64,000 nt of DNA. Origin: Lepidodermella squamata. Taxonomy: Eukaryota; Animalia; Gastrotricha. Position numbers and translations under genes: made by a program. Every line of letters begins with the position of its first letter. The stretch's first letter is position 1. This document shows, in pieces, positions 1,381 to 64,000 of this stretch. The notes under the pieces are model-generated. The model was not told the origin of the DNA and ran no database searches. It was given only the letters and a program-made list of their open reading frames with translations. Location of the stretch: positions 434,001-498,000 of the forward strand of contig JBLDXI010000023.1 of assembly GCA_047495785.1 (NCBI GenBank), in the 5' to 3' direction.

Positions 1381-4300
1381 ATGAAATTGATATTTCTACT
1401 TTTTGTGGAAATATGTTTCATGGGTACGTTAATTGCTGCTAGGCAAATCGACTACGACAGCGTAAGACCTGAATACTCCTTAACTCATCCAAAATCAGTT
1501 TTTCGTTCAGGCTTTCAACCAAGCAATTGTATCGGGTCAAATTGCGACGGTTCGGCAAATGTTAAATTCCGGCCTGGCTACCGCGAATTCTGCGACCAGT
1601 CGATGGAGTTTTCGATGGGGATACTCAGGCCCAGCTATCGTGGCTGCTGTTCGAACAAATCAAAGCTACGAAATGGTTGAATTGTTACTTGAAAGCGGCG
1701 CAAATACTGAGGCGAAAGATGATGGTTACGATTTTAGCTCATTGAAAACCCCATTCCTATGGGCTGCGAGACTTGGCAGGCTGGATCTAGTGAGACTTCT
1801 CGTCGAAAAGTACAAAGCTAAAACTGATACTCGAGATAACATAAGGCAGACGGCGTTGATGGTTGCCTTGGACGGCCCGATCACCCAAGACTATCTTCGA
1901 CTAATCTACTATTTGTTACCATTCGAATCGCCTAATTCCAGAAACAGTGACGGACAAACCGCCCTTCATATACTATGCCGAGTCACAACAACGGATCCAC
2001 TGCCTTTCGCCAAATTGCTTCTCGAGCATTTCAAAATGGATGTAAATGCGCGTGATTCCCTTGGCAACACGCCGCTGCTAATTGCGGCCAGAACTGGCAA
2101 TTCTACCACTTTACTCCAGTACTTGATCGACCACGGAGCCGATCCACAGGCGAAGAATAACGAAGGCGAAAATATGTTGCTTCAAGCTTGTCAAATCAAC
2201 AAGGCCGCGTTGAGCCATATTGATTTTATCAAGTTTGCGATTGAAGTAGGTGGAAATGACGTTAATTCAAGATCGAGAGCTGCAGCTTGCGGCTATTACC
2301 TTCAATTGACTCCCGCTGGGCCACAGATTGACGACTGGGATCTCGTCGATATTATGCAGTACTTGGTTAGTAAAGGCTATGATGTCAACGTTAAGGATAG
2401 TTCTTCGGGTTTCACCGATTTAATGTCTGCAGCGTTGAATAACCGGGAGCATACTCTGGTGGCTCTACTTGATCTGGGTGCTGATGCGAATGCTACGAAT
2501 GACCTTGGCTCCACTGCGATGGACATTGCACGGAACAATGGAGATACAATTAGCATTGCCAATTTAAGAAGGCGAGGTGCTGCTTTAGGCAGGGAATTGG
2601 TTATCGGATCATCGACCAAGCGCGTGACTCAGACATCAACAAGTCCTGCCACAACTCCGGTGACTGCCATTTCAACCAATTATTTGCCATTAACGCCCAG
2701 CGATGAGACGATCGACGATGGATTGCAGCGGATGTTTGGAGCTATTTTCAAGGCGAGATCAACAACAGCGGGGAAGTCCAGCACTACTACAAGACTTGCC
2801 AGGAAACTCGTGCGGAACGAAACACAAGATGAGCTGAATTCGGTAAGTTATGGTGGATTTCGCGCCAAAAACATTAGGATGATCGGGAGTAGATTCCTAG
2901 AATATTGGTTTCTGAGCACCGCTCGCCTCTTCTCTCTCATTTGCTACCAATTACATTTTGTGATTGCGGCCTTCCCGGCACTAGCTTTCAAATACGCTCG
3001 CTCTCGAATCTAACGGAAAGATGAATGCTGAGAGTTAGCAAGCCAAGGCCTCCGCGTTCTTCCGTGGAGCTTTGATGATATTTTCAGGCTAACCCAAAGA
3101 ATCAAATTTTGAAGCAACTTCTAGAGTCTCGACGTGCAAACAAGTTCCACAGACCTAGCTTATGTGGTATGTGGTTACTCCACTGGTCTTCAGTTAGAAC
3201 TTCTCACTTCTAATAGAATAAATATTCGCACATAGTCCACTATTACCTTCAATCTTGAGATGAACCAATTGGTTGTAATCAGCTTTTAACCTTTTGGCAG
3301 AAATTTGTTGGCTATGTAACGACTGGGAACATTACTGCTGTTCGCGAAATGATTCGGCTCAATCAATCACGCGGGGACGCGCTTTTAATGAAACACCACG
3401 TTGACTACACAACCGGAGTATGCACAGACTTGAAATGGGATGAACCCATCCCAGCGGTGGCTGCTGCTTTAAGCGTCAAAAACACTCCGTCGGAAATGCT
3501 CCAAATTCTACTGGAAAACGACGGCGACGCAAATTCAATTCACCCTAATCTTGAGAAATCAGCTCTAATGCTTGCCCTGGAACAAGATCGCCTTGATCTG
3601 GTTCAATTGCTCGTCCGATTCGGAGCAGACGTTGATTTGGAAACTAATGGAAGAACGGCAATACTCGACGCTTCGTCAAAGAATCTTGAGATTGCTAGGT
3701 TCCTATTATCACAGGGGGCTTCTAAATACGTTGATCAAATCCTCTTTGAGGCTTGTCGAATCTCTAAATTTCCTGCTCTTCCAATGGTGAAATTCGCAAT
3801 CGAGGAGGCTGGAAATTCTGTTTCCAACAAGGATAACGAAAGCAGGAATGCTCTCGCAGTCGCAGCCATGTACCTGAAATCGCCAGATCGCGTTCAGGTC
3901 TACGAATATCTTCTTTCAAAAGGGGCTGATGTTCAACCCAGGATAAATTCGGCTGGATACCAAAACTATACGTTGCTACTTCTAGCTGCACGCGTCGGTA
4001 ACTTTGAATTGGCAAGATTCCTTGTCAAAACTGCCGGTGTAAGCCTTGAGGATCGCGAATCAACTGGACAAACTCCGTTAATGATCGCAGTTTCTAGAAA
4101 CAATGGCAAAACTATTGTTGATCTACTCGTCGACTCGGGCGCGGATGTAACGGCCGTTGATGAAGGTGGCAATAGCGCCTTTCTGTTGGCTTGTAAAAAC
4201 GACGACAAGACTCTCACGCGAGCGAGACGATTCACAAACTTCACAGGGGTGGATGTGAATTCGCAGAACAAATACAATGACACGTGCCTCACGCTGATTC

Positions 4301-4689
4301 GAAACAACTACGAGTTCAACGGTTTTGCCAAACGTCTCGTCCAGAACGGTTACGATATCAATCGTAAACTGCGAAGGGGAGATACTGTTTTGCATACCAT
4401 CGCAGCTCAGGGCACTGCGAACAATGTTAAAGAATTGATTGAAGCTGGATCTGATATAAATGTATTAAATGACGATGGCTACAACCCGTTAGATTTCGCA
4501 CTGCTTTACCGGAATTCGCGTACAGCAGATGCGCTGAGAAAAGCTGGAGCCGTTACAGCTAAACCAGCAATGTTGTTTTTGACAACTAAAGCGGTTCGTT
4601 CTACCACGAAAACTGCGATACAATGGAAAAGGACGACGATCGTTACCAATAATGCTAGGATGACAACAGAAGCAAATGTCAATGATTAG
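1381..4689 (+). CDS. Secreted ankyrin-repeat protein, array copy 1 (3 exons, about 933 aa)
   Basis: Exons 1381-1461 (MKLIFLLFVEICFMGTLIAARQIDYDS, hydrophobic signal peptide), 1511-2842 (ANK module A + S/T linker, ends DELNS|GTAAGT) and 3301-4689 (GGCAG|KFVGYV..., ANK module B). Both introns are GT-AG, phase 0, at the same positions as in the paralogs. Many GxTPLxxAA...LLxxGADxN ankyrin motifs. AATAAA at 4718. Confidence 0.88.
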
Positions 4690-5320: not shown

Positions 5321-8300
5321 ATGAAATCGATTCATCTATTGTTTCTGCAAATATATTTTACGGCTGCAGAGAAGCCAACAAAGACTAATGACGGCCCACA
5401 TAATGTCAACTACGACAGCGTAAGACTTCTGAAATCTCTCAATTCCAACTCAGTTATTTTGTTCAGGCATTCAACCAAGCCGTCGAGTCAGGCCGAATCA
5501 CAATAGCTCGGCAGCTATTGAAATCTGGCCTTGTTAACGCAGATTCATCTTTCTTCTTTTACCCGGAACACCAACCATTTATCGTAAATGCAATTAGGAC
5601 GAATCAGAGCTACGAAATGGTCGACTTCTTACTACAAAACGGCGCAAATGTGGAGGCAAGAAATTGGGGCTACAATGATTCGAAGAATGCATTTCTCATG
5701 GCTGCTAGAGTAGGCAGGCTGGATTTAGCGAGACTTCTCGTTGAGAACTACAAAGCTAAAACAGACGTTCGAGCTGAGAAACGTCAAACAGCGTTGATGG
5801 TTGCCTTCGACGGCCCGGTAACACCAGATCATCTTCGGCTAGTTTACTATCTCTTACCATTCGAATCGCCCGATTATAGAAACAGGCATGGGAAAACTGC
5901 TCTTCATATACTTTGCCGAGTGACAACGACTGATCCGGTACCTTTTGCTAAATTACTTGTGGAAAAGTTCAAAATGGACGTGAATGCGAGCGATAACGAC
6001 GGCAACACGCCGTTGCTAATTGCGACCAGAACCGGCTATTCTATAGCTCTACTTCAGTACTTGATCGACCGAGGCGCCGACCCACAGACGAGAAACAACG
6101 AAGGCGAAAACATGCTGCTTCAAGCTTGTCGAATCGATCGTACGTTGGATTACATGGCCTTTATAAAGTTCGCAATTGAGGTTGGCGGTAATGACGTGAA
6201 TTCGAGGACGGAATCGGCCAGCTGCCTTTATCACCTCATGTGGCGTAATTGGCCTTATTCATTGCGTGAAAGGGAACTCCTCGAAAGTATGCGTTACTTA
6301 GTTAGCAAAGGCTTTGATTTCAACGCTAAGGATGACAATTCGGGCTATACCCCTCTAATGTCTACAGCAGCTTCGCGCTATCAAAGACAAACTCTTGTTA
6401 CCCTGCTGGATATGGGTGTTGATGTGAACGCGACGAATGACAAGGGCGAGACTGCTTTGGACATTGCAATAGCGATGAGGGAAACAATCAGCATCGGGAA
6501 TTTGAGAAGACGAGGCGCAGCTTTTGGCAGCGAATTAGGCATTGGATCATCGATTAGACGCGTAACGCTAGCGACTCTGACATCACCGAGTCCACTATAC
6601 GCGATTTCGACGGCTGCTATTGCCGCTACCAACAGGTTTCCGTTAACGCCCAGTGATGAGGATATCGATGCAGGTTTGCAGCCTATTGTTGGAGCAATTT
6701 TCAAGGCTAGATCAACTGTGGCCAAGAGATCCAGTACTGCAAGCTTTACTGCTGAGCGAAGACAGACGACAGCAAACGACAAGTCATCGTTCAATGAGCG
6801 CAACTTGGTAGGCCAAATCACTTAAATATAATGCAATATCAGCCAATGACACAATGAGCAGGGTTCAATTGTCATTACATTGCGGACTAGACCCTCCTTT
6901 CAAGCTCTCCTTTCATCTTCACTATCAAGGCTTAGATCCAAGCGTCGTGAAAGGAATTAATGCCGACTTAATTTATTAAGGCCAATCAATGCTTTGACAA
7001 TATAAATCAATCTGAATTATAACGCATGCCCATTGCGGAACGACATTGCCATCAACCATCGCTGTGTCATTGGCTGAGATACGCACTCGCATGGTAAACT
7101 TATCATCTGAGCGTTCGGTTTTAATCTAACAAATTAGGATTGGGGATTGGCAGTAAAAAAGCCATAAGCCCCAAAGCCTTAATAATGTGGATTTTGAATT
7201 GCGCGAAAAAGTAGTGTTTCTAGTTGAGACTTCCCCGGAAATTTTCAAAAGACGAGGAACAAATTCAGAAATTCCCAAAGCAATGTCGCAATATCAAAGC
7301 GGTGGAAAGCAATTGAGCAATATGTTATTGTCCTCAATGGCTTTCCACCCCAAGAACAAAAAGTTTCCGTCAAAACTCAGTAAGAACTGATTTCACATCA
7401 AATCTGTTCATTAAATGCCATGCTTCGGGTAATGTTTCGGGTCAAATTTCGAGCAGGGTTTAATTGCATCTATTTTTTCATTTTTCCGCAGAGATTTTTT
7501 GGTTATATAAAAGCTGGAAACGTAACTGCTGTTCGCCAAATGATACTATTCAATGAAGCCCGCGGAGATGCTCTTCTAATGGAATATCAGCAGTGGGAGT
7601 ATTTCGACCATTGCCGGGATCTTGGTTTCGACCAACCCATACCAGCTGTGGCTGTTGCTTTAAGCCAGAAAAACTGTTCGCTGCAACTGCTACAAGTTCT
7701 ACTCGACAAAGAAGGCGACGCAAATGCAATTCATCCAAATTCTATGAAATCCGCTCTTATGCTCGCCATCCAAAGGAATCGCCTTGATCTGATTGAATTG
7801 CTCTTCCAATACGGAGCAGATGTTGATTTGGAAGTGGATGGAAGAACGGCGATACTCGACGCTTCGTCCAAGAATCTTCAGATTGCTAGATTCCTATTAT
7901 CACAGGGAGCTTCTAAGTACGTTGATCGAATCGTTCTTGAGGCTTGTCGGATCTCCTCAATGCCTGCTCTACCCTTGGTGAATTTCACAATCGAGGAAGC
8001 TGGGAATTCTGTTTCCGACACGGATGCTGAAGGCAGGAATCCGCTAGCAGTCGCGGCTATGCACTTGAAATCGCCAGATCGACTTCAAGTCTACGAATAC
8101 CTGCTATCGAAAGGTGCTGATGTTAATAATATTATAAATTCGGCTGGATACCAAAACTATACATTGCTACATCACGCTGCATGTGTAAATGACTTCTTAT
8201 TGGCGAGATTTCTTATCAAAACTGCTGGCATCGGCCTTGAAGATCGGGAATCAACTGGCAAAACTCCATTGATGATTGCGGCTAGTTACAACGCGAGAGA

Positions 8301-8895
8301 AGTTGTCGATCTGCTCGTCGATTCGGGTGCAAATGTAACGGCTGTTGACAATGATGGAAACAATCCCTTTTTGTTGGCTTGCGCCAATGGTGACTCTAGA
8401 CTAATTCTCGCTACACGATTTGCAAACTTCGAAGGGGTGAATGTCAATTCGCAGAACAACAACAACGACACGTGTCTCACCGTAATTCGAGAGTACGCCG
8501 CGTTCAATGGTCTTGCCAAGTTTCTTGTCCGGAAAGGTTACGATATCAACCGAAAACTGCGAAGGGGAGATACTTTATTGCACATGCTCGTAGTTCGGGA
8601 TCCGGAGATACTCGGAAGGGCCTCGAGATTCATGGTGGCTCAAAATACTGCCCGGAATATTAAAGAGTCGATCGAAGCCGGAGCCGAAGTTAATGCGCTG
8701 AGTGACGATGGCTATACTCCGGTTGATTTGGCTTTGCTATTCCAAAATGAGGAGGGTGAAGATTTGCTGAGAGAAGGTGATGCTGTTTCAGCTAAACCGG
8801 AAATGTTGCGTGTGACACGAGAGAACATTAATGTTTTCACGATTACTGTGGCCAGTGACTACGTGTGGGGTTATGATCGAGCCGATATTGAATAG
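5321..8895 (+). CDS. Secreted ankyrin-repeat protein, array copy 2 (3 exons, about 947 aa)
   Basis: Exons 5321-5419 (MKSIHLLFLQIYFTAA...NYDS), 5467-6807 and 7492-8895. GT-AG phase-0 introns. Frames match ORFs 5518 and 7420. Confidence 0.86.
6839..7077. mobile_element. MITE-like element in intron 2 of copy 2
   Basis: Perfect 15-bp inverted termini TCAGCCAATGACACA / TGTGTCATTGGCTGA. Confidence 0.6.
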
Positions 8896-11047: not shown

Positions 11048-14000
11048 ATGTTGATATATTTGATTCTTCTGGACATTTTTCTCGCGAGTGAGAAAGTTGA
11101 GGCAATCGACTATAACTGTGTAAGAATGCCAGAAATTTTTCAATTTTCTACAATTAAAGATTATGTAGGTTTTCAACCAAGCAATCATGTCAGGCCAATT
11201 TTCCGTTGTTCAGCAAATGCTGAATTCCGGTTTAGTCGACGTGAATGCAACATCCGTTTACCTAAGCTATCAAGGTCCGGCTATTGTGAATGCAGTTCGA
11301 ATAAATCAAAGCTATGAAATGGTTGAACTTCTACTGAAAACTGGTGTGAATGTCGAGGCGAGGAACGAAGGCAACGCAGATTCTAAAACGCCTTTCCTCT
11401 GGGCTGTGAGGCTTGGCAGGCTGGATCTCGTGAGGCTTCTCGTCGAAACGTACAACGCTAACACTGATGCTCGAGACTCGAACAACCAGACAGCGTTGAT
11501 GGTTGCCTTCGACGGCTCTCTCACTCAAGACTATCTTTGATTAGTCTACTACTTACTACCATTCGAATCGCCTGATTCCAGAAACAACGATGCTATGAAG
11601 ATTATTTGTTTCGCCCCACTCCTCCCAGCCGTGGCTGCAGCTTTGACTTACAATTTGAGCAATTCGAGAGATACGGCGGATGTCGCACAATTATTGTTCG
11701 AAATGCTTCAAATTCTGCTGGAAAACGATGGCGACGCAAATGCGATTCATCCTCAATTCAGGAAATCCGCTTTAATGCTCGCAGTAGCACAGTCTTGATC
11801 GCGGAAGACGTTGCCGATTTACTCATCGATTTGGGCGCTGATGTTACGGCTGTTGATAATGGTGGGAAAAATGCATTTTTGTGGGCATGTACAGGGTGTT
11901 TCATAAAAAAACCGAACTCCTATAAAAATGTACTGCTGCTGCGCGTTATCGATTTTTTTCGCGAGCGCATTTTTTTCTCCAAAAATGCACCAAAACCGCA
12001 CGGTCACCGCAAATTTTACGCATTTCTCCGAGAGAAAGCCATGCGGTAGCAGCAACAAAATTAGCGGTGTTTCAGGCACATTTTCAGTTACAGTGTGAGT
12101 TTTACACGGTGAAAACAAAATTCCTCCGGTGAATTCGCATATTTTATTACGATCCACATTTTCACCTAAAGTTTATACGAAAATTCCTTAGTGACAAGTT
12201 GTTTGCGGCTTCTCTATTTCCAAAAATTCTATTTTTGCATCAAAATCAGCAAATAAACCGCCATTTTTATTGAACGGATGGCCCCTTTCAAACGCAGCGC
12301 GACGAAGTCCCAATCCTGACCCTTCGCGCTCCGGTATCGAGCCCGACTGGGAAGCGGGTCTGCCTGGATCCCGGATTGTGCTTAATGGAATGAATTCAAA
12401 CAAATACCGCAATAGTGGACAGAGGGGGCACAGGCAAGGGCAGATGTCAATCCGAGTGCGGCGAAGTGAACTATAGGTAGTTAAAAGTGTATTTATGTGC
12501 ACTTCTAGCTCCGCCGAGCTCGGGCATCGGCATGATACTCGAGCGAAAAGAGCGATGATCAGTTCCACACTATGGCCAGATTCGGGGGTTCCACACTAGG
12601 ACAGCCCAAGTACGGCGAGAACCCAACGTTTTCCGCCGCACTCGAGCCGACACCTCGGCTGGCATGTGAGCAGTCTAACGAGATTTGTTCAAATTCGTTG
12701 AATTTACAGTGTCGCATACTGGCATGTTCTAGGGAAACCCGAGCGCGCAGTGGCAAAGCGCCGTTATCCAACCGTACACAAGCCGGCTAAAACGCGAACT
12801 GGCCGAAATCGGGCTTGGGATAGGGTCCCAACACCAAACAGCGCTAAGAGCTTTTCCATCACAGAAAATTGAAGTTGTTCCAATCAAATCCATTCTTTTG
12901 GACGGACAAGCCGCCATTCATGTATAACATGTTGGGAGTGGAAGCTATGACGCGATTGTTATCCGACGACGCTGAATCTAAGATATTATATTTCGAAACT
13001 AGGGATTATCAGAAGTATTAACAACCAATGTAGTGCTAAAACATGCCAACCAAAGACCAAACAAGATGAGGCATAAAAGGCATTTGGTCAGAATTTTTGT
13101 CGGAACGGTTCGGTCAGAACGTGCACGAGTCTACTGTGAGAATTGCGGACGCGCACTTCTTATGCATGAAAAGCAATGGGCGAATGCACCAAAGCAATTG
13201 ATTTCGTTGAGAAAAAGACGAAAGAGCATTTTCTTTAATAAGCACAATAGCAGCATATCGCGTTGTTGTCGGTCAGTAGTAACAAATTTTCGGCCGATCA
13301 CTCGTGTCTCATCAGCGGCGAATTATTACGCCGCATATGCCCAGTGCACGCGAATCCGCATGGAGATACATTGCTCTCTTTGTGGTATAGTTTTGGCAGA
13401 TGTCCGTACTCAAGATGTAAAATGAAATTGTCCGCAGAGTTTTGTCGTCAAGTTTTTGCTGACAGTTTTTTGTTTGAGCGAAGGGTTTACTATAAGTAGG
13501 GCCTTCCCCAGGTCATACGTTGATCATATATTTACCACGGGTAACTAAAGTAGATCTCATTGACCGCTAATAACACGGCGTCCATGCGTGACATCCGTCA
13601 CTCTGAGCGAATACTTGACACTGAGTCATGGAAGAATGCCAGTCGAGCTATGCTGATTTCTGTCAAATCTACCATAGCCTTTACCAAGCACGGCAGCGTA
13701 TCGGCAGCGGCATTGTGTTCTTCTCCCCTTCCGGTTTCTCGATAGAGTGTGTGCCGGCCATGATGCCTCAAAGGTTGTAGCCGAGCCTTCTCAGAGAGAT
13801 ATCCTGTGTTCGATCCCACGATTTTTGATCAGCCCGACTTGTTAAAGCACTTTAAACACGAGATGTGGATGTATTGCCGCAATTGCACGTTCAAGTTAGC
13901 GATTGTGCGCGTTCAAGTTCCTCGGTGACTTTTGCACGGCGCATGCGCATAGCGAGATAAGTAAGATCTCAGTTGACAATAATTCAAGAGCGACGCAGGT

Positions 14001-15072
14001 TTGGACGGAGTTTACAAGTTATTTCAAAAGAGAGAATCAGAGACAATCAATATTCGGCCGTTACCCTTATTTCTTCCCTAGTCGAATATTTCACTGTCGT
14101 TTTGCCGTTGATCCACTTTCAGTTTGCCTGAAAAGTCCTGAAAACCTAAGAAACCACACACTCCGAGGTTAAACGCCACGAGGGAACTGCAGATAACGTT
14201 ATTTTTCCACGGTGAAACTTGTTCAATTTCCTATAGCAACATTTGCTCAAATTTTCAAAACGTTTCACCGTCGTTTCACTGTTGATCTACTCGCAGTTTA
14301 CCTTAAAACTGCTAAAAATATAGGAAATCGCACACTTAAACCCACGCCAAAGCTAAATTGAAGAATGCACGGCAATAGTTTTGAAAGCAAAGTTAGTCTT
14401 TATCATCGAGGATAATTTAGGTTAAATTTCACAGAAATTGACCGCAGGTTAGCCGTGAATTCACACCGTAAAATGCCACGTTTTCACCGTAGAAATACCG
14501 CATTCCTGCCGCTTTTTTCTCCATGCGACACAGCAAAAAATAACATGGCGCATGGAAAATCGATAACGGCAGTACTTTTTCTATATTATCTATGCATGCT
14601 AATATAAGGCTCATCTCGTACGGTTTTTTATGAAACACCCTGTAGTACCTTTGACGGACGTCTACTGCTCGCCAGAAGATTTGCGAACATCACAGGAGTG
14701 GACGTCAATTCTCAGGACGAAAAGAATGAAACGTGCCTCACCCTTGTTCCTGGTGTTATCCTCTTCGACGCGTTGGAGGAACTAGTCCAAAGAGGCTACG
14801 ATATCAACCGGAAACTGCGTGGGGGAGATACTGTTTTGCACATCCTCGCAGCTCGGGATACTGAAAATAATATTCGCGAGTTGATTGAAGTTGGATCCAA
14901 TGTTAATGCACTCAACGACGATGGCTTTAACCCGCTCGATCTGGCAATGCGTGCAAACAATTTGCTCTCTGTAGATTTGCTGAGAATAGCTGGGGCTGTT
15001 ACTTCTGGAGCCGGGACCGTTGCTTTCGACAACACAGGTCAGATCCATCATGACACTGCATGGCAAAAATGA
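11048..15072 (+). pseudogene. Ankyrin-array copy 3, pseudogene
   Basis: Exon 1 is 11048-11119 and exon 2 starts at 11169. Premature TGA at 11538-11540 where paralogs have CGA (DYLR). A large deletion near 11592 fuses module A to module B, and a second deletion lies near 11795. A 2.75-kb TA-flanked insertion occupies 11892-14642. The 3' remnant is 14645-15072. Confidence 0.88.
11892..14642. mobile_element. Non-autonomous Tc1/mariner-like DNA transposon (2751 bp) inserted in ANK copy 3
   Basis: TIRs CAGGGTGTTTCATAAAAAA(A)CCG at both ends. TA duplicated at 11890-91 and 14643-44. Excision restores the frame (..WAC-STFDGRLLLARRF..). No DDE transposase ORF seen. Confidence 0.9.
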
Positions 15073-15569: not shown

Positions 15570-18121
15570 ATGCTCTTCTATTTGATTCTTCTGGAAATTT
15601 GTCGCGTAAGTGCGACAGTAATTGGAGATATCGACTATGACAGCGTAAGAACCCTAAATGATGTTCGTTTTTGACGAATCGTGATTGATTATTCAAGGCT
15701 TTCAACCGAGCTATTGTAAATGGCCAATTTTCAACCGTTCGACAGCTGTTGGAGTCCGGCGTAGTTAACATAACATCAACATCCTATTACCGCCCAAAAT
15801 ACAAAGCCTCGGCTATCGTAAATGCGGTTCGACGTAATCAAAGCTACGAAATGGTCGAATTCCTACTGGAAAATGGCGCAAATGTTGAGGAGAGGAACTG
15901 GGATGTCGAAAATAAATACAGTTATGGAAGTGATTATGCGAAAACGCCATTTCTGTGGGCTGCGAGACGTGGCAGGCTGGATCTCGTGAGACTTCTCGTC
16001 GAAAGGTTCAACGCTAAAACTGATGCTCGAGACTCGAACAACCAGACGGCGTTGATGGTCGCCTTTGACGGGCGAGTTACTCAAGACTATCTTCGATTAG
16101 TCTACTACTTACTGCCATTCGAATCGCCTGATTCCAGAAACAACAATGGACAAACTGCCCTTCATATGCTTTGCCTAGTGAAAACTACTGATCCAGTACC
16201 TTTTGCGAAATTGCTGGTGGAACTGTTGAAAATAGATGTAAATGCGACTGATAACAAAGGCACCACCCCGTTGATTGTTGCAGCAAGAACAACCTACTCC
16301 TTCCCCCTGATTCAGTACTTGATCGATCAAGGAGCTAATGTCAATGCGACCAATGACAAGGGCGAGACTGCTTTGGACATGCTGTGGCAAGATACCATTA
16401 GCCAGGAAATGTTAAGAAAACAAGGTGCTGCTTATGGCCGTGAGTTAACATGGACCGAGCGCGCGACTCGGACATCAGCTACGACAAAAACGCCTAGCAA
16501 TATTAGGCCATTGACGCCTAGCGATGAGACAATCGGCGTTGGTTTGCAGCCGATTGTTGGAGCTGTTTTCAAGACGAGATCAACTGCGGCAATGAGGTCC
16601 ACTACTACACGCTTTAGACCAGAGCGCGAAAAGCCGGCGGCATTGGAAAGATCGCAAAATCGGCTCAACTCGGTGGGTTTTTGCTTTTCAGAGCTGCCAG
16701 TTGCTCTAAGAATTGCATACTATGTTTGCATTTGTCCACAGAAATTCTTTGGTTACATAAATGCTGCAAACGTCACTGCTGTTCGCGAAATGATTCGACT
16801 CAATCAAGCCCGCGGTGATGCTCTTCTAATGGAACAGCATGACGACTACGTGGATTGCATGAATTTGCGTTACGTAGAGCCCATCCCGGCAGTTGCCTTT
16901 GCACTAAGTGTCACAGGCTCTACGCTGGAAATGATGAATTACGAGAAAGCAATATTTGAAATGCTTCAAGTTCTACTCGAAAACGATGGCGACGCGAATG
17001 CGGTTGACCCTAGGTTCGACAAATCCGCGTTATTGCTCGCAGTAGAAAGAGATCGCCTTGATCTGGTTGAATTGCTCGTCCAATATGGAGCAGATGTTGA
17101 CTGGGAATCCAATGGTAGGACGGCTATTGTCGATGCTGCGTCCAAGAATCTTGGAATCGTGAAATTCCTCTTTTCACAAGGAGCTTCTAAAAACCTGGAT
17201 CAACTCATTTTCGAGGCTTTTCAGGTCTCCTCAATCCCTGCTCTTCCGTTGGTGAAGTTCGCAATTGAGGAAGCTGGAAATTCTGTTTCTGACACGGATG
17301 CTGAAGGTAGCACTCCACTTGGAGTTGCGGCAATGTACTTGAGATCGCCAGATCGCGTTCAAGTCTATGAATATCTGGTCTCAAAAGGGGCCGACGTTAC
17401 TACCAGGTTTAACTCGGCCAGATACGGATACAAAAACTATACATTGCTACAACAAGCCGCGCGTATCAATGATTTGCAAGTTGCAAGATTTCTCATTAAC
17501 ACGGGCGGTGTCGGCCTCGAAGACCGAGAATCCACTGGAAAAACTTCATTCTTGATTGCAGCTGCAAACGGTGCGGATGACGTCGTCAATCTTCTCATTG
17601 ACTCGGGCGCAAATGTTACGGCTACTGACAATGATGGAAATAACGCTTTCTTGTTGGCTTGTGGTTGTTACGACTCGAGTTTAAGGCTCGCCAGAAAATT
17701 TGCAAACTTCACAGAAGTCGACGTCAATTCACAGAACAAAAACAACGACACGTGTCTAACTCGAATTCATTCTGACTACGAATTCAACGATTTTGCAATG
17801 TTTCTCGTGCATAAGGGGTACGATATCAACCGGAAACTGCGTGGAGGGAACACTGTACTGCATATTTTCGCAGATCGTTGGTACCCAAACAATGTTAAGG
17901 AGCTGATTGAAGCTGGAGCTGATGTTAATGCACTGAATGACGATGGCCATACCCCGCTTGATTTGGCGCTCATACGCGACAATACTCAGGCTATTTCCGC
18001 ACTAAGAGACGCTGGAGCGGTTACAGCGAAACCGACCAAGTCTCTTCAGACGACTGTCACGGCAGCTGCCGGCACTGCCGGAAGTTTCCTTCTCGGAAGC
18101 TGGCCAGGATGGAGAAATTAA
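15570..18121 (+). CDS. Secreted ankyrin-repeat protein, array copy 4 (about 809 aa; internal deletion in module A)
   Basis: Exons 15570-15644 (MLFYLILLEICRVSATVIGDIDYDS), 15698-16672 and 16742-18121. Intron 2 (16673-16741) is 69 nt, in frame and stop-free, so the ORF track reads A+B as one 790-aa ORF. Module A jumps from LIDQGA to NVNATNDKGETALD. Confidence 0.85.
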
Positions 18122-38700: not shown

Positions 38701-39117
38701 CTGAAAAAATTCGAATTGAACGGTTTCGCCAAACTACTCGTCGAGAAAGGATACGACATCAATCTAAAATTTCGGAAGGGCGATACCTTTTTGCACATCC
38801 TCGCAGCTGAAGAGACTGCGATGAATATCGGCGAGTTGATTGAAGCTGGGTCCGATGTTAATGCGCTGAATGACGATGGCCATGCTCCGCTTGATTTGGC
38901 AAATTTCTTCCAGAATCGAGAAGCTGCGTATTTACTGAATAATGCTGGTGCTGTTACAGCGCTGCCGGAGATTTCGCAGACAAGAGCCGCTAGCAGGTTC
39001 TCCATTACAACAACTATGATAACTGAAAATAACGATGAAGGCGAGAGGGATACTGATGATGCCATGATGACAAATGAAGACGATGATAAAGGCCTGGGCT
39101 ATTCCGATATGGATTAG
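35756..39117 (+). CDS. Secreted ankyrin-repeat protein, array copy 7 (about 973 aa)
   Basis: Exons 35756-35857, 35905-37233 and 37627-39117. Closest to copy 2 (DGPHNV exon 1). Module B has a partial ANK duplication (MIAASNNAERKVDL...MIAVDNNVDKVIDL). Acidic C-terminal tail. Confidence 0.86.
37261..37441. mobile_element. MITE-like element in intron 2 of copy 7
   Basis: Inverted arms sharing GGCGAC.GA.CGACTTGCCTAGAATGGAAA. Confidence 0.6.
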
Positions 39118-48600: not shown

Positions 48601-50418
48601 ACACCTCCAGCCTGTGGTCTGACCTCTCTTTTCTCGTCACCATCTGGCAATGCCAAGTACCGCGTCGTCATACAAAACCCAAATAATTTAGTTACGGTAA
48701 TAAACAGAAGTATGTTTCCAACATGGTGCACTCTTATGTTTTTTTCGGCAGATGGCGATTGCCCCGTTGCCAGGCAACGGCGATACCCCAAGCTCTATTT
48801 GCTTCTCGAATGTTTCGTACGTGGTGAAAGGCGGCATGACCTTTGTTCTAAGCAGCGTGCAAGGCAATAACGCCGACATCTTCGTTCAAAAAGCGTACTT
48901 TAAATGATCTCTTTATATTCCTCAGTTTATTCTTCTTTATCAAGGTATATGTGGCTACTAACGCCAGGAAATAGAACCCTGCTGCCCACTAAGGTTATAA
49001 CGTCTTCAACGGCATCTTTATCTTCGAGTTCAACCGCTTCGAGCTCAACAGTTCAATCGCTTAGCACTTCAAGTCCGGCTAGCTCTACAAGCAGCGAACC
49101 AGCAACCAGCGTCCTTACTCCAATGGAACCTTTACCAACTACAAATACGCCTCTTCTATCGAACGGCCTAATCAGTACTAAAGCAGTTCAATCAGCCACG
49201 ATGATTGCAGGTATGAAGCAACAAGGTGGGATAGGTTTGAGTGGTGAAGATTCGGCCAAGGAATATCAGCAGGATTTGGATGCTACTAGTCGCTCACCGA
49301 GTGGGTTCCCAATCCCGGCACTATTCACAGGCAACGCCCGTCCAACTGTTAAACTGGCTGATTTGACAAGTTGCCCGTATATAAGTGCCGAGGAACGCAT
49401 GCCGGAAATCGGAACCCTCATATACGCGACTCTAACCTTGGAACGGTTGTTCAAAATCGACACAGCCGAGCAGCAGGTCTCACTTTGGGGATCACTGCTT
49501 CTACAGTGGGTGGTTACATCTTGCGAGGCAGATTACACGGCGCCGGGAAGTGACGTCAAAGAACGGTTGGTTTCGACCAGAAGTAAAGACATCTGGCGAC
49601 CGACGTTGATTTTCGCAAATTCGACAACAGAATTTGATTCGCCGTTGGATTCGGAGGCCAGCGACAAGTTGGACATTGCCTACTACCCGACAGCTCCTAA
49701 CCGTTCGTTGTTTTTCCACTGGAACCGAGTTGGAACTTTTGTGGCACGCTGCCAACTCGACCTTACGACTTTCCCGTTCGATAAGCAATCCTGCGAATTC
49801 ACGGTTGTTTTCGACGAGCCGTCGGAATTTGTCGCGTTCGGCGGAATCTACGTTCGAATTCCAGACTCGCTCGCCAGTGGCATTTGGCAATACACATCAC
49901 GGAAAACCAGTCACGGTGTCATCGCATCACCCACGCAACTCACCGCGAGGGTTTCCTACGCAAAGGTCACGCTGACCTTCGAGCGCGACCCAGGGTACTT
50001 TATCATAAACATGCTAGTTCCGTGCTACATTCTTCTGACTCTCGGCTTCGGAACTTTCTTCATGGATCCCGCTGTTCCCGATAGACCGGCTATCTGTTGT
50101 ACCATAATGTTATCGCTTATCGTAGCTCAGTCTGACGTTTTGCGGAGTGTGCCTGAGACCAGCCAGCAAATATTGTATGCAAACTATATCCTGGGCTTGA
50201 CTGGTACTATTGCTCTTATCGCTATGTACCAGATCATCGTATCGGCTGTTGCTTCGAAACGTGGGGAGAAGTACACCACGGTAGTAAAATGCCGCTTCTT
50301 GCCAGCTATGGAGTTTATCCGCCTATGCGACATCCTCGCGTTTCTCGCAACCTTCGAAGGCATTCTGGGCATCAATGTTTACTTTATTTGGATTGCGATG
50401 CGTGGTCGTGATAATTGA
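45692..50418 (+). CDS. Cys-loop (pentameric) ligand-gated ion channel subunit with a long duplicated N-terminal ectodomain (10 exons, about 1073 aa)
   Basis: Exons 45692-45743 (signal MRNFLTFCTAVCLAHVR), 45812-46044, 46239-46368, 46417-46688, 46787-46947, 47163-47391, 48107-48353, 48416-48696, 48752-48894 and 48945-50418. All introns are GT-AG with consistent phases, summing to 3222 nt. The last exon has IWRPTL..N (loop A), the Cys-loop CQLDLTTFPFDKQSC (C-x13-C), pre-M1 R-x-P-x-YF and four hydrophobic helices. The exon 3 acceptor and exon 8 donor are the least certain junctions. Confidence 0.8.
47697..48105 (-). mobile_element. R2/NeSL/Utopia-type non-LTR retrotransposon remnant (restriction-like endonuclease C-terminus) in intron 6 of the channel gene
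   Basis: Frameshifted minus-strand pieces KIRQKIATELRGQGYNEEGHC / SRRFDIPAI..GMVIDSTIRCE..VNKEKRTIYVP / IEVHVLYIDARGSL..VLKDSVRVVNHHL match the REL-endonuclease pattern (EEVHC, RRxDI, IDPTIRxE, EKxxIYxP, GARG, HHL). Confidence 0.72.
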
Positions 50419-51949: not shown

Positions 51950-54900
51950 ATGCATTTTAATCTGTTGATTTTTCTCGGAATAAGCTCTACCGGCTCGGTC
52001 GTTTATGCTGGAGTGGTCGACGACAGTGTAAGAGCTTGTAAGGTTTCAAGTCAGACTGAAAATTTGTTTTTACAGGTTTTCGGCCGTGCAATAATATCCG
52101 GCCAAATTGCAACAGTTGAGCAAATGCTGAATTCCGGCCTTGTTAACGCCAACTCCATCTCGTATTATCGCCCGGGACGCCGAGCCCCAGCTATAATACA
52201 CGCAGTTCGAACAAATCAAAGCTACGAAATGGTCGATATCCTTCTAAAAAACGGCGCAAATGTCGAGACGAAGGCTGAAGAATTTGATATGAAAACTCCA
52301 TTTCTCTTTGCTACAAGAGCTGGCAGGCTAGATCTAGTGAGACTTCTTGTTGAAAAATACAATGCTTCAACTGACGCTCGAGACAGCAAAGAACAAACGG
52401 CTTTGATGGTTGCATTTGATGGCCCGATCACTATAGACTATCTTCGACTAGTCTATTACTTATTACCATTCGAATCACCCGATTCCAGAAACTCAGACGG
52501 GCAGACTGCCCTTCATAAACTTTGTAATGTTGCAACAACGGATCCAGTGCCGTTTGCTAAACTGCTAGTGGAGCAGTTCAAAATGGATGTCAATGCGAGA
52601 GACAAAGGTGGCGACACCCCGTTGCTAATTGCAGCTAAAACTGGCTATTCGATCACTCTACTTCAGTACATGATCGACCAAGGAGCTGATGCGCAGGCAA
52701 GGAATAACGACGGCGATAACATGTTGCTTCAAGCTTGTCAAATCGATCGTACGGAGTTGAGCCCCTTGACCTTTATCAAGTTCGCAATTGAAGTCGGCGG
52801 CAATGACTTGAACTCAAGGTCAAAATTAGACGGTTGCGACTATCGGCTTCAAATGCGTAGTGGTGCGCAGGTGCGCGACGGGGATCTTGTCGAAATTATG
52901 CGCTACTTAGCTAGCAAAGGCTATGATTTCAACGCTAAGAATGGCAATTTTAGTTATACCGCTCTAATGTCCGCAGCAGCGTCAAATGATCGACAGTTAA
53001 CTCTAGAGGCCTTGCTCGATCTTAGTGTTGACGTGAATGCGAAGAATGACAGGGGCGAGACAGCCTTAGACATTGCGACAATGCGCAACAATAAATACAG
53101 CGTCATCAATCTGAGACGACGAGGTGCTGTCCTGGCTAGTGAACTTAATCTGACATCAACGAGCTCATCATCTACATCTCCGACAAAACCTGAGGCTATC
53201 GTGACTTCAAAGTTTTGGCCACTGACCCCTAGCGACGAGGCAATTGACGATGGTCTGCAACCGATTGTCGGAGCAATTTTCAAGGCAAGATCAACTGTGG
53301 CAATGAAGCCCACGACAGCTCGAGCAGCCGCAAAAGCTGTGCGTTATGAATCGCAGAATCAGCTTAACTCGGTAGGTTAAATATTTACAAGGAGGGGTAG
53401 TCTCGAAGCTGTTCAAATTGTTATGCTTACTTAGTCGATGAAGCTTCGACTCTATCCCCGGCTAATCTTAGCCGAAGGCGGTTCCGCATTGAAACATATT
53501 AGTATCGGCTAAGATGCCGAAGATTGCAGTTGAAAGTCGGCAATAATTTTGATTTCAAAAAAGTTCGCCGATTTTCTCCTTTTTGTAATCTTTCGCTCAA
53601 TTCCCGGCCCATATTAGTTCCGTCCAGTCGGAGGGTAAAAGTGGACTGCAAAACGCGCATAAGTCGAAATTTTTAGAAATTTCAAGGCCGCGTGCGTCAA
53701 AGTCAAAGGGCAAGTTTTGATTATTTAGTCCACTTTTACCCTCCAATTGCGCAACCGACGCTTGGGGGCCGGATGGAACTAATATGGGCCCGGAATTTTG
53801 CTAATCTTTCTTGTCCCTCGCCTTATTGTTCTTCTTTCCTGGCGAATTTCTTTGGAAAGACCTATAAAGTACACAACCAGCTCAGCACATCAAAATGGGC
53901 CTATTTAACCGATTTTTCTTGATTTTTTCAGCGATTTGCTCAAAACGTGAAAAATGGGGACGTTATTGCTGTTCGCGAAATGATTCGACTCAACCAATCT
54001 CGAGGGGACGCGGTTTTCATAGAGCAGCAAAGAGACTATATGGATTGCCAGACGTTTATTTACTACCAACCCATCCCAGCAGTGGCTGCTGCTTTAAATG
54101 TCGTCTATCCTTCTTTGGAAATGCTTCGAATGCTGCTAGAAACCGATGGAGATGCCAATGCGATTCATCCAGAGTTCATGAAATCTGCGCTAATGCTTGC
54201 CGCCGAACACGGTCGCCTTGATCTGGTGCAATTGCTCTGTCAATACGGGGCTAATATTGATTTCGAAGTGAACGGGAGAACGGCGATACTCGACGCTGCG
54301 GCCACGAAACTTGAGGTCGCGAAATACCTCTTTTCTCAAGGAGCGTCTAAAAACGTGGATCAAATAATTTTCGTGGCTTGCCGAATCTCCACAATGCCTG
54401 CTCTCCCCATGGTAAAATTCGCTATTGACGAAGCTGGGAATTCTGTTTCTGACAAGGATACTGAAGGCAGGACCCCGCTTGCAGTTGCTGCAATGTACTT
54501 AAAAACGATAGATCGAATTCAAGTCTACGAATATCTGATATCAAAAGGGGCTGACGTCAATCATACCTGGATAAATTCGGCCGAATACCGAAATTATACA
54601 TTGCTGCATCACGCGGTACGTGTAAAAGACTTGGAACTGGCTAGATTCCTAATCAAAGCCGCTGGTATCAGCCTTGAAGACCGCGACTCGACTGGAAAAA
54701 CTCCATTATTGATTGCAGTTGATAGCCAAGTCAACAATATTATTGATCTGCTCGTCGGCTCAGGCGCAGATGTATTGGCGGTTGACAAAATTGGTAACAA
54801 CGCCTTTTTGTCGGCTTGTCAGATTGAGTACATGCCTTTCACGTGGGCCAGGCGATTTGTGACCTTCGAAGGAGTGGACGTAAATTCTCAGAACAACAAC

Positions 54901-55263
54901 AATGACACGTGTCTAACCCTAATTAACGGCGGCTACGAATTCAACGGTTTTGCCAAGTTTCTTGTCCAGAAAGGGTACGATATCCATCGCAAACTTCGAA
55001 GAGGAGATACCGTTTTGCATATCATCGCAGCTCGAGAAACCACGAAGAATGTTGTCGAGCTGATTGAAGCTGGATCTAATGTTAATGCGCTGAATGATGA
55101 AGGCTATGCCCCACTCGATTTAGCATTGATTTACGGTAATACTCGCGCTATATCTGCGCTAAGGGATGCTGGAGCTGACACGGCTAAACCACTGCCATTT
55201 TATCTAACGACAGTCACCACTTCCGCTTGGCGAATGGGTACAGCAACTACAGACCACAACTAA
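51950..55263 (+). CDS. Secreted ankyrin-repeat protein, array copy 9 (about 901 aa)
   Basis: Exons 51950-52027, 52076-53371 and 53932-55263. Intron 1 (48 nt) is in frame and stop-free, so the ORF track includes the signal peptide. Confidence 0.87.
53595..53801. mobile_element. Short (207 bp) MITE of the same MULE/foldback family, in intron 2 of copy 9
   Basis: Starts GCTCAATTCCCGGCCC and ends GGGCCCGGAATTTTGC. Shares GAGGGTAAAA..GGAC with the 30119 element. Perfect 9-bp TSD TAATCTTTC. Confidence 0.85.
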
Positions 55264-59645: not shown

Positions 59646-62600
59646 ATGCGTTCTGTTTTAGTACTGACATCTGCGATCGCACTGGCCAATGCCCAAATCG
59701 ATTTCAACAGCGTAAGAAAGTAATCAGAATCTCTATGACTCTTTCATTACAAAAGCTGCATTCTCAGGCTTTTTTTGTTGCCGTTGGAAATGGCCAGCTC
59801 TCGACCGTCAGGCAAATGCTTGCGAGTGGCTTAGTGAATGCGTCTACAACATCGGTGATCCAGAACGATGTCGTAGCTCCAGCACTTATCAACGCTGTTC
59901 GGGTAAAAGCCAGACCATAATTATCCGAATTCCGATACTTTTTCAAGATTCCGCTAGCGCTTCGGTAACTCTCAATTTGACGGTAGTTATTTTACCGCAG
60001 CACGCAAACAAGGTCACCTCAATGCTTTAGCTGTAAAACGAACGCCGCCGCGTCTGCAAATTTTTACCGCACGCGGCGTTAGTTTTACCGTAAAAGCACT
60101 TGCGGCAGTTACTCTTTAACGCAAGCTTTTGTCTTTCCACTTCGCAAGAAGCATGCTGCTTATGAGCCATGGAGGAATCCTATGGTAACGCGTCATTTTA
60201 TAACACCCTAAACCAACAGGAAATGTTCCTGCCCAGTTGGTTATTTTTTGCCTAGACGGAAAAAGTGATTCTGCCCGATGTTTCTGCCCGCTGTTTCTGC
60301 CCGCTCAAACGATTAGGGTGGATTTTTTATTTTCGAAAATCAATTGATGCTCTCGAAAATTCGGGAAAACCTCTCACCTGAAATAATGTTGCACAACTTC
60401 AATTTCCGTTCCCAGTCCCTTTACTACAACCTTCAGACTCTGACCAAACGAGTGAACAAGTGAATAACCTTTATTAGAATGTTTAAACTTTAAAACAAGT
60501 GTTTGGGCCGGATTAATTGTTAATAACGACGGAGCAATTCGAGAAATTGAAGATCGGCATGGGTTTAGCTTGCTTTACGGGTGGCTCATCGCGCGGGTCA
60601 TTTTCGACGTTTCGAAGCAGCAGCGTTTGCGAGAAATGCGACTCGGCCACCACCAATCCTTCGGTTGGCTTGATCTCTTGTGCAGACACACCCGAAACTG
60701 CAGCTGATTGTCCATCACCGAAACCGACAGCCAGTTTGTCGCTGATACTTCGTCGACAAATCGGCTCCAGTGCTGCTTGGTTTTCCGAGCTGTGCCGTTT
60801 GCTTCAAAACCAGCCACGAAATTTTCGACTTCTTGAATGAACTCCGACGTATCACCCTCTTCATCGGATTCTTCTTCTTCGATATCAGCATCAAGTTCTC
60901 GTTCGAGAAGTCGAATTGGATCGGATTCTTCGCGCTGTTTCACTTCCACGGAGCCGTCAGCGAGAGCACCGAGGCCCAGGTCGCCAATATCAAAAGTGAT
61001 CTCCATTGAAAATTCGACGGAAATTCGCAATATTCAATTGATAATAAAACAAGGAAATGAACAACGAACAAAAAAATTCAAAAAAAAAAATTTGCTACAA
61101 ATTTTAAGCTGGATTTCTTATTTTCGTTATTAACAACGGTCATCTTTCATACGCACTATACACCATTCCCCATTTTCACTCGTCCGAGTGTCGGATTAAC
61201 GAAAATAACCAACTGGGAAGGAACAGGAACTCTTCCCTTGTGTCTCGGGCAAAACCTCGAATTCAGCCCTTGAAAATACCCTCGGGCTTCGCTTCGCTGC
61301 GCTCCGCTACGCCCTCGGGCATTTTCAGCGGGCAGAATTCTCGGTTCTGCCCTCAACACCGGGAAGAATTCCTTATTTCTGTTATACTCTTACTCTACAG
61401 CGGTTGCGTAAGACGCTCTATTAATTACCGTTTACGGTAAATTAATTACCGCAACTAGAGAACAATGGCTAGATGGAGTTACCGTCAAATGGAGTTATAC
61501 CGAAAGGCTAACGATTCCGGATGTAAAAGTGTTCAAATTTATTCTCATCTGTAAGGTTTTGCTCATTAAAAAAAGCTTCAGGTGTCACAACTTTCTCTGA
61601 CAATCGATCGACTTTCGAAAAAGACTGGCTCTCAATTCTTAAAATTGAATTATTTTCTTCTCAAAGGGGGAAAGGGGGTGGGAAATGAGGGTTATCGTAA
61701 ACCCCAGAAAACCACAGGGGGACCCTTTGGTCCTAAATTTGGGGTCCGAAAATACCCCTAGTTCGAGAATACTACTTCGCGCATTGAACCTTAGCAATGA
61801 TTGCTGAATGGAGCTTCAACAATCCGGCCGAGAATCCGCTTTGTTTGGGGAATAATTGTGATTAAAAAAAAAACTCGTCACAAGTCCAAACCCAAGACCA
61901 ATCGCATCAGTAACTTCTTGAAATATTGGCACTTATTTGAATAACTTATTTGAATAACTTGTTTTAAATTCAAACAGGCGAATAATTACGATATGGTGCA
62001 ACTTCTGCTCGAGAACGGCGCCAATGTTGAGGAGACGAACGAACCAGCTAGAGATTACGAGTTCACAATGCAGCGAACCCCACTGCTATGGGCGGCATAC
62101 CAAGGCCAGCTGGATATTGTCCGGCTTATGCTTCAAAAGTACGGCGCCAAATTGGACGCTGCCGATCGGGACGGCTATTCAGTTCTCAGCACACTTTTCC
62201 AACTCAAAATTCAGCCGCAGAACTACTGGTCCTACGTCGCACTCACCAGCTACTTGCCTGGGGAATTGCTGAATTGGAGAAGCGCAAGGGGTCAAAACGC
62301 TTTACACTTCGCCAGCCTTGTAAGCCCTACAGACCCGATGCCTTTCGTTCGAATTCTAGTTGAAAAGCATAAATTCGACGTCAATGCGAGAGATAACAAT
62401 GGTTATACTCCTCTACTGATGGCGGCTAGAGTTGGCCGATCACTAGACCTGCTTCGTTACCTCATCGAAAAAGGAGCCGACCCGAAGGCGGCGACTGACG
62501 CCGGTGAAAACTTGCTATTGAGTACTTGCCAAATCAGCAACAGACGCGAGGCTTTAAACTTCATCAAATTCGCTATTGAAGTCAGTGGCAACGACGTTAA

Positions 62601-64000
62601 TTCTGAGATTGATGGGAAACGGTGTGACAGCCTGTTTCGCTACTCCGCCGGGTTTGACGCTGAGCACAACCGGTTTTGGATTCAACTCATTAAATACTTG
62701 GTTAGTCAAGGATTCGATCTTAACCCGAGCAATGTGAATACCCCGCTGATGGTCGCAGCTGCGGCTGAAAGATCCTTGCCGTATTTGGAGACTCTGATTG
62801 ACATGGGCGCCGATGTTAACGCGACGAATTACGAGGGCAAAACTGCGCTGGATTTGACGAGGCCGTCGCGTGATCAGGTTAACATTGGAGCTCTTGTAAG
62901 GCGAAAGGCTGCTTGGAGCCGAAATTTCACACGCGTTGCTACTTTTTCGACGCCTAATCGACGGACAACTACTCGGCCAATGACTACAACAGACTCTGGC
63001 AGAAAGTCGATTGATGCTAAGATTGATTTCATGGCGGATGATGCGATTGAACTTGTTCCGGTCGAAATGGGTGGTCCGAAGCTTAAGATCAGGCCGCTGG
63101 ATCGCCGAAGCAACCTGACAACGAAGGTTGACATCAGTCCTGGTGATTATCAGCTCACCCAGGCCCAAGCTGAACTGGATGCGGTTAGTTTTATCTCATA
63201 GATATCTAGTTGAACAAAATGAATTAGCCGTGGGACAGTACGCGTTGATTTCACTCTTCTCTTTACAGAAATTTATCAAGTTCGTGACGGATGGCAACAT
63301 GGAAGGTATTCGTGATATGATAGAGCAGCAGAAGGCCCGAGGCAATGCCCTGCTCTTCAAGCTTCAACAATCCCCCATGTCACGCAAAGCAAATTACATC
63401 ACCATCCCAGCTGTGGCTGCTGCTCTCAGCTCTCAGTTAAAAGGAAACGACACTTTCTACATGGTCGCGGCGCTTCTTCAAAATGGCGGCGATGCTAACG
63501 CTGTTCATCCTGAAACTGGCTTAAGTGCTATAATGATGGCTGCTGCAAACGGCAGTTTCGAATTGGTTGACCTTCTGCTGGAATATAACGCAGATATCGA
63601 TATGGAAACTTTCTCGAAAAGGCCGCGGACTGCTCTCCTCGAAGCTGCTGCAGCCAATCAACTCGAAATGGTCGACTATCTTTTGTCAAAGGGAGCTATC
63701 GCCTACAAGGATGAGCTGATTTTCGCATTCGACGCAGGAAATAAAGTTCCGGTTTTGCCGTTGGTCAAATACGCTGTTGAGAACGTATCCAATTCAGTAA
63801 ATGGCACGGGCAAGGATGGCTATACCCCGTTTGTCAAAGCCGCTTTGCAATTGCGAAATAGTCCAGATCGCCTTGAAATTCTGACGTATTTGCTAGAAAA
63901 TGGAGCCGATGCTGACTCCAGGGTGTCCACAGATCGATTCTCAAACAAAACCTTACTTCACCTTTCCATTTTGGAGAAGGATTACAATTTGACGCAGTTC
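59646..64000 (+). CDS. Divergent secreted ankyrin-repeat protein, array copy 10 (4+ exons, runs off the window)
   Basis: Exons 59646-59711 (MRSVLVLTSAIALANAQIDFNS), 59768-59902, 61978-63183 and 63269 to beyond 64000 (KFIKFVTDGNMEGIRDMIEQQKARGNAL...IPAVAAAL). Same architecture plus one extra phase-0 intron. Confidence 0.82.
59952..61513. mobile_element. TIR DNA element with 4-bp TSD in the extra intron of copy 10
   Basis: Imperfect TIRs CG(C/T)TAGC..TTCGGTA..ACTC..ATTTGACGGTA. ATTC at 59948-51 and 61514-17. Superfamily unassigned. Confidence 0.65.
60199..61386 (-). mobile_element. Crypton-like element remnant nested in the above
   Basis: TATAACA...TGTTATA ends. Inverted CCCAGTTGGTTATTTT / AAAATAACCAACTGGG. 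Terminal stem-loop at 61200-61385 with CCCTCGGGC-TTCGC-GCTACGCCCTCGGGC. ORF 60575-61030 has an acidic tract and EVENFVAGFEANGTARKTKQHWSRF, like the N-terminus of Crypton/DUF3504 tyrosine recombinases. Confidence 0.55.

Follow-up and report, generated by a model that had tools for sequence, protein, structure and literature searches.

Natural proteins built on canonical ankyrin solenoids, such as ankyrin-R/B and Espin, are cytosolic. In our literature searches, the secreted ankyrin proteins are exclusively bacterial or protist effectors and latrotoxins, and a described animal family of ankyrin proteins with signal peptides was not found. Here we analyze a 64,000-nucleotide stretch of Lepidodermella squamata DNA, hereafter the window (contig C23, positions 434001–498000, within a 121-Mb assembly of 151 contigs). 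Wnt genes mark the genome as that of an animal, the assembly contains no COX1, and searches with an intron-less HSP70 and an EF-2-like ORF gave identities of ~75% and ~65%, spread over many phyla, without a close named relative. Searching it with unit 1 by tblastn reveals ten tandem units of one three-exon ankyrin gene on the forward strand. The short first exon probably encodes a signal peptide, and the two exons that follow encode homologous ankyrin modules, A and B. Judging from sequence and comparative evidence, we consider secretion with an extracellular binding role to be the best explanation for these genes, and one that is somewhat favored overall.

The family shares its fold and the same variable face with the canonical solenoids, namely the membrane-binding domain of ankyrin-R/B, Espin and the DARPins. 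To this plan it adds a secretory-type leader exon, a second homologous solenoid connected to the first by a mucin-like linker, invariant cysteine pairs, conserved N-glycosylation sequons and a Thr-rich tail. The latrotoxins of widow spiders are, like this family, animal-encoded proteins with ~20 ankyrin repeats, and they act outside the cell that produces them. They have a large N-terminal domain and lack a classical signal peptide, whereas the proteins described here have a leader and show no specific sequence similarity to them. Because the ankyrin repeats begin ~10 residues after the leader, a latrotoxin-type N-terminal domain is absent, and with ankyrin families alone detected we reject membership in the latrotoxin family. 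The effectors that intracellular bacteria and Plasmodiophora secrete are likewise exported ankyrin arrays, and some of the eukaryotic ones are reported to carry signal peptides. Those effectors act inside host cells, whereas the present family is animal-encoded and has spliceosomal introns.

An exhaustive phmmer search with module A found no specific relatives outside this genome among 1.84 billion representatives. A word-index search with the fused 807-amino-acid copy from unit 4 and a search of the ESM Atlas returned generic ankyrin proteins only. The best outside matches are generic multi-ankyrin proteins with at most 44% identity over repeat-sized stretches. Judged by these searches the family is lineage-specific, as an earlier note on this DNA, made from the letters alone, had proposed. 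The same note had advised a check for a bacterial origin by horizontal transfer, of which we see no sign. A horizontally acquired bacterial effector was rejected, since each gene is interrupted by two or three spliceosomal introns bearing host splice signals and has no close bacterial homolog.

Gene structure

In unit 1, exon 1 (1381–1461) encodes the leader MKLIFLLFVEICFMGTLIAARQIDYDS and is followed by the donor GTAAGA. Exon 2 (1511–2842) is module A, whose 444 amino acids cover 10 ankyrin repeats together with a Ser/Thr linker and a conserved helix, and exon 3 (3301–4689, stop included) is module B with 12 ankyrin repeats and a tail. Both modules were delimited using Pfam, tblastn and AlphaFold2. 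The junctions 1461/1511 and 2842/3301, already marked in the earlier note, are conserved phase-0 sites. The leader exons of units 1 to 10 measure 81, 99, 72, 75, 81, 84, 102, 81, 78 and 66 nucleotides (nt), and the first introns 49, 47, 49, 53, 51, 49, 47, 46, 48 and 56 nt. These values reproduce exactly, in all ten units, the micro-exon of 66–102 nt and the intron of 46–56 nt described before. The leader exon ends in (I/V)DYDS directly before GTAAGA; GTAAGA, GTATGA and GTAATA occur as donors and YAG as acceptor. A housekeeping intron in the HSP90 gene of the same genome has matching size and splice signals.

A conserved phase-0 GT donor closes module A right at the limit of conservation, and module B starts at a conserved acceptor. 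The two modules stand in the order A–B in 24 of 27 loci, comprising 17 of 20 paralogs fetched from elsewhere in the genome and all seven complete units of the window; for two of the three remaining loci, none lies within the 5 kb fetched. In unit 4, intron 2 is only 69 nt long and in frame, so that A and B form a single open reading frame (ORF) of 807 codons. We assign A and B to one gene because of these phase-0 sites at the edge of conservation, the regular succession of the modules and the read-through in unit 4. The three-exon gene model is well supported by this comparative evidence and, as a reading of genomic sequence, very probably correct.

The leader exon

The leaders were compared across 30 copies, 10 from the window and 20 fetched from five further sites of the genome. 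All 30, the ~44%-identical subfamily of unit 10 among them, retain the start ATG and the open frame, and in each a phase-0 GT donor leads into a mini-intron of 46–60 nt. Among the 14 copies in which exon 1 has its standard length of 81 nt, nucleotide identity is 0.78 in exon 1, 0.71 in the intron and 0.67 in the 150 nt upstream, and the pooled ratio of nonsynonymous to synonymous divergence (dN/dS) of exon 1 is ~0.38; these figures are indicative only, because the pairs are not independent.

Each leader contains a hydrophobic core, with a 12-residue Kyte-Doolittle maximum of 1.6–2.9. All 30 place ~7–15 hydrophobic residues within the first ~25, as expected for the h-region of a eukaryotic endoplasmic reticulum (ER) signal peptide. 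A candidate cleavage site with small residues at −3 and −1 lies near residues 16–22 in all of them (IHA/RAI, IDA/RKI and ANA/QID, the stroke marking the site). By this heuristic scoring, the hydrophobic leader with a cleavage-type site that had been noticed in the window looks signal-peptide-like in every copy. A motif-free scan for an ATG, a hydrophobic core, a −3/−1 site and an in-frame donor has a background rate of 0.086 per kb per strand and recovered 8 of the 10 window leaders.

Non-coding motifs, CAATGCCGTAGTAGAATCGTG and TATTGCTTAATGATAGCTG among them, are conserved family-wide 80–130 nt upstream of the leader ATG, with a consensus of approximately CACGCACGGCAATGCCGTAGTAGAATCGTG and TATTGCTTAATGATAGCTG (example in the window, 1251–1301). 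From their position and conservation they are likely to be shared promoter elements, in agreement with transcription that begins before exon 1.

As a control for a true secretory signal-peptide exon in this genome we used cathepsin L genes (C3 and C10 loci, L051–L055). They share the layout of a ~60-nt mini-exon and a ~55-nt intron with the ankyrin genes; their mature protein is unrelated. Their signal peptide (e.g. MQYNIANSIMLILVGSALVG) is encoded on a mini-exon of 58 nt, with an intron likewise of 58 nt after it, lacks a basic n-region and has a hydrophobicity similar to that of the ankyrin leaders. The ankyrin leaders thus resemble true signal-peptide exons of the organism. More than 100 Peptidase_C1 matches occur in the genome. 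Taken together, the comparative data make it probable that the ankyrin leader is a signal peptide.

Protein modules and fold

Models of both modules were calculated with AlphaFold2 from paralog alignments. Module A was modeled with a predicted local distance difference test score (pLDDT) of 81.6 and consists of 10 ankyrin repeats (residues 1–357), followed by a Ser/Thr/Pro linker that is disordered, the conserved helix (398–412, ...LTPSDEAIDDGLQPIVGAIFKARST...) and renewed disorder. Module B (pLDDT 85.7) has 12 repeats and a disordered tail, with a long β-hairpin inserted between repeats 1 and 2. The total of 22 repeats agrees with the roughly 20 counted previously. Pfam matches in the ten units are exclusively to ankyrin families, and membership in Ank/Ank_2 (clan CL0465) is evident from Ank_2 E-values between 1e-27 and 1e-63, which clear the cut-offs by a wide margin. 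The two modules are homologous from end to end (hhalign 99.95%, 29% identity), module B having two additional repeats. In Foldseek, module A matches ankyrin-1, AnkB, Espin1-AR and DARPin fusions with E ~1e-13 and template modeling (TM) scores up to 0.64.

No membrane span was detected in the mature part. Its highest hydropathy peaks reach 1.84 (19-residue window) and coincide with ankyrin helices modeled with high confidence, in keeping with the earlier report of no transmembrane helix. The C-termini were also searched for a KDEL-type ER-retention signal, and none was found. A glycosylphosphatidylinositol (GPI) anchor or a downstream exon encoding a membrane span was rejected, because the tails are polar or rich in Thr and no exon further downstream is conserved.

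The conserved cysteines described as LQAC..C and LLAC..TC correspond to C227/C260 in module A and the homologous C298/C329 in module B, and they are present in every copy that possesses the region. The pairs have been retained since the duplication that gave rise to A and B, and C227/C260 is also found in the ~44%-identical unit 10. Two further cysteines of module B are frequent: of the 24 aligned sequences, 20 have C41 and 23 have C152. Among the recurrent sequons, the NQS at N50 of module A is invariant in all 27 paralogs, and A N327, B N10, B N222 and B N326 are each retained in 20–25 copies. By their conservation, cysteines and sequons fit disulfides and N-glycans; this is compatibility and not proof.

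The mucin-like linkers mentioned in the earlier note are conserved Ser/Thr tracts, and family members have poly-Thr tails in addition to the Ser/Thr-rich linkers. The isolated helix of module A (residues 392–418; 2684–2764 in unit 1) is flanked by disordered Ser/Thr tracts and strongly conserved, with T395, P396, D398, L405, R416 and T418 invariant. It may serve for docking or processing. A subset of C-termini (window 18070–18121; L008, L010, L012, L013 and L014) consists of a poly-Thr stalk and a conserved end, ...GSSPSLGGWPGW(K/N/R)x-stop, while other paralogs have acidic DE-rich tails or an early stop. We know of no named motif that resembles GSSPSLGGWPGW, which may serve in sorting or attachment.

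Evolution of the family

Pairwise dS between intact paralogs is ~0.8, and the window units are deep, separate lineages instead of recent tandem copies. Pairwise dN/dS is 0.17–0.23 in helices and 0.25–0.30 in loops, and dN exceeds dS in no pair for either class. Variability is concentrated at the inter-repeat loops and the helix1-helix2 turns, the usual binding face of ankyrin proteins. Positive selection in the loops was tested as an explanation and rejected on the range of 0.17–0.30; the loop variability is relaxed constraint, with positive selection not demonstrable. Pseudogenes and fragments do exist in the family. Nevertheless, the immune-type birth-and-death evolution proposed in the earlier note is not supported, because the paralogs are old and both helices and loops are under purifying selection.

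A young 'MIS...' clade accounts for the cluster on contig C54 and a cluster near 1 Mb on contig C23, its members forming almost identical pairs. The pairs L008/L010, L014/L018, L015/L017 and L020/L022 link C54:74–137 kb with C23:986–1037 kb and have branch lengths of 0.005–0.09. The pairing reflects either a recent segmental duplication or haplotypes left uncollapsed.

A second ankyrin family (L035, L036, L038, L039, L041, L043 and L044) has exons of 458–952 amino acids that begin right after the acceptor (...EVYEQLWN(V/A)T.ETGDVEQVRQLV...). A quick scan saw no leader exon within 500 nt upstream of them. Fusion of sushi/CCP and ankyrin in one exon was sought as independent evidence for extracellular ankyrin in this genome, but six large sushi ORFs examined contain no ankyrin.

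Composition of the array

The window is a portion of a ~240-kb cluster that houses the lineage-specific multigene family. At least ~35 copies with a full-length module A are present genome-wide, and most of them are clustered on contigs C23 (~402–640 kb and 958–1037 kb) and C54. The ten tandem units announced in the earlier note were all recovered by tblastn, but not all of them are intact: unit 3 is fragmentary, unit 6 is split, units 4 and 8 carry deletions and unit 10 is cut off. In the following, positions are those of leader exon, module A and module B on the forward strand, the modules being located by tblastn.

Units 1, 2, 5, 7 and 9 are full length and intact and encode 901–973 amino acids. 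Unit 2 (5321–5419, 5467–6807 and 7492–8895) has a long leader variant, MKSIHLLFLQIYFTAAEKP...NYDS. The leader of unit 7 (35756–35857, 35905–37233 and 37627–39117) is also of the long kind. Unit 5 occupies 19224–19304, 19356–20711 and 21458–22786, and unit 9 occupies 51950–52027, 52076–53371 and 53932–55263. Units 4 and 8 have open frames and internal deletions in module A. The former (15570–15644, 15698–16672 and 16742–18121) retains 325 amino acids of module A, and its module B ends in ...GSFLLGSWPGWRN. The latter (41313–41393, 41440–42381 and 43634–44878) has a module A of 314 amino acids, without the C227/C260 region, and a module B of 414 amino acids.

Unit 3 is degenerate. Its leader exon (MLIYLILLDIFLASEKVEAIDYNC, 11048–11119) precedes a fragment of module A (11169–11609, A residues 1–156) with an in-frame stop at 11540 and a fragment of module B (14641–15072, B residues 298–444). 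In unit 6, the leader exon (24045–24128) and module A (24178–25449) are followed by a reverse-transcriptase element inserted in intron 2, and module B is broken into two pieces. The first piece (28286–29119, B residues 1–271, also matched by Pfam) runs into a stop, and the second (34656–35198, B residues 271–448) lies 5.5 kb downstream. Unit 10 is a divergent member, and its leader exon (MRSVLVLTSAIALANAQIDFNS, 59646–59711) has the most canonical signal-peptide shape of all. An additional intron of ~2 kb interrupts its module A, separating exon 2a (59768–59902, the first 45 amino acids, donor GTAAAA) from exon 2b (61978–63183), which encodes the remainder, is ~44% identical to unit 1 and keeps C227/C260. 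Its module B (63269–64000) is truncated by the end of the window.

Three things interrupt the array. The reverse-transcriptase element (25633–28016, minus strand, Pfam RVT_1) has inverted end arms of 67 nt that are 90% complementary. It contains the RVT_1 ORF (26778–27761) and a second ORF of 316 amino acids (25952–26902) with no Pfam match. A 5.5-kb AT-rich insertion (29119–34656, ~36% GC) breaks module B of unit 6. Within it lie a 471-nt palindrome that is 92% perfect (arms 30119–30589 and 30629–31099) and a second hairpin at 34233–34485. Finally, between units 8 and 9 the forward strand carries a gene unrelated to the ankyrin family (45487–50418). Its ORF at 48904–50418 matches the Cys-loop ligand-binding domain PF02931 with 32.7 bits, weak but above threshold, and the adjoining ORFs 45487–46095, 46254–46703 and 48526–48870 have no Pfam match.

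Discussion

We propose the following route for the products of this family. Exon 1, which would be joined to the main transcript by splicing of the mini-intron, encodes a leader of 22–34 residues, most likely a cleavable ER signal peptide; the predicted cleavage point lies behind the small residue in front of R/K-x-IDYDS. The 10-repeat solenoid, the disordered Ser/Thr/Pro linker and the short conserved helix come from exon 2, and the homologous 12-repeat solenoid with its β-hairpin insert and Thr-rich tail from exon 3. The resulting product of ~900–975 amino acids would enter the secretory pathway, where disulfides and N-glycans could form. The lack of a detectable membrane span and of an ER-retention signal argues for passage through this pathway to the exterior, and the protein would then be released or displayed extracellularly. 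Outside the cell, the two solenoids would serve as protein-binding modules.

Several observations weigh against secretion. Eukaryotic ankyrin repeats are overwhelmingly cytosolic. The scoring of the leaders is heuristic and does not come from a trained signal-peptide predictor. A basic n-region, with K or R at position 2, is present in 13 of the 30 leaders and absent from 17. Roughly half of the 30, among them the majority of the young 'MIS' clade, carry Glu or Asp in mid-core, some other leaders have a polar residue inside the hydrophobic core, and the unit 2 leader is only weakly hydrophobic. The density of sequons, ~5 per module, is by our own estimate near compositional expectation. Lastly, in a search of sequencing runs only a genomic run contains this DNA, a second run of the same study being without it; contigs of that genomic run traverse the introns without skipping them.

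Some of these features would suit an uncleaved N-terminal signal-anchor, which would make the proteins membrane-tethered and not soluble. The ankyrin part would then be lumenal or outside (type II) or, as in cytochrome P450-type proteins, cytosolic (type III). The 'MIS' clade comes closest to such an anchor, since its hydrophobic stretch starts at residue 2 without a basic n-region and continues for 17–19 residues before H-A-R. Yet the core is short and interrupted by E, Q, H or G, and a classical n-region with K/R, together with a c-region of the A-x-A type, is seen in unit 10 and the older lineages. Moreover, the cathepsin L signal peptides of this genome do without a basic n-region as well. 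The conserved Cys pairs, sequons and poly-Thr tails fit a lumenal or extracellular ankyrin part. Overall, we regard a signal-anchor as unlikely, although it survives better than the other alternatives.

Slightly less likely again is that the proteins are secreted to act, as effectors or toxins, within the cells of another organism, be it host, prey or symbiont. Ankyrin proteins described in the literature as bearing a signal peptide or being otherwise secreted are mostly effectors or toxins. The family is large and clustered, and the organism is fast-evolving, its genome small and its Wnt genes few, traits that a parasite or symbiont could be expected to show. However, the proteins have no translocation, pore-forming or latrotoxin-type N-terminal domain, and Pfam finds ankyrin families only. 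The old paralogs under purifying selection are also unlike an arms race.

The least likely alternative is that the proteins are cytosolic, with exon 1 outside the main transcript or an upstream ORF and translation from exon 2: this would agree with the normal location of ankyrin repeats, with the internal ATG or TTG codons in the exon 2 ORFs and with a genomic run as the only one found, but it is at odds with the retention of exon 1, frame, donor and mini-intron in 30 of 30 copies across deep divergence (pooled dN/dS ~0.38), with conservation of exon 2 that starts exactly at the acceptor and not at an internal ATG, and with the promoter-like conserved motifs upstream of exon 1.

These gene structures have practical consequences for annotation. 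A naive ORF-level prediction would overlook the leader exon of 66–102 nt, and the family would enter the annotation as a set of cytosolic fragments. With cathepsin L signal peptides on ~58-nt mini-exons, it would overlook signal peptides genome-wide. Since true secretory enzymes share the mini-exon layout, secretome annotation of this organism needs splice-aware models.

More tentatively, the ankyrin solenoid may be used here as an extracellular, glycosylated and disulfide-stabilized scaffold, giving the animal dozens of two-module receptors for the recognition of self and non-self, microbes or matrix. In use, such a repertoire would be comparable to the variable lymphocyte receptors (VLRs) based on leucine-rich repeats (LRR) and to DARPins. 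If secretion holds true, these proteins would be rare natural extracellular ankyrin scaffolds, a large animal family that sends 22-repeat arrays through the secretory pathway, and would represent a natural counterpart of the engineered DARPins.

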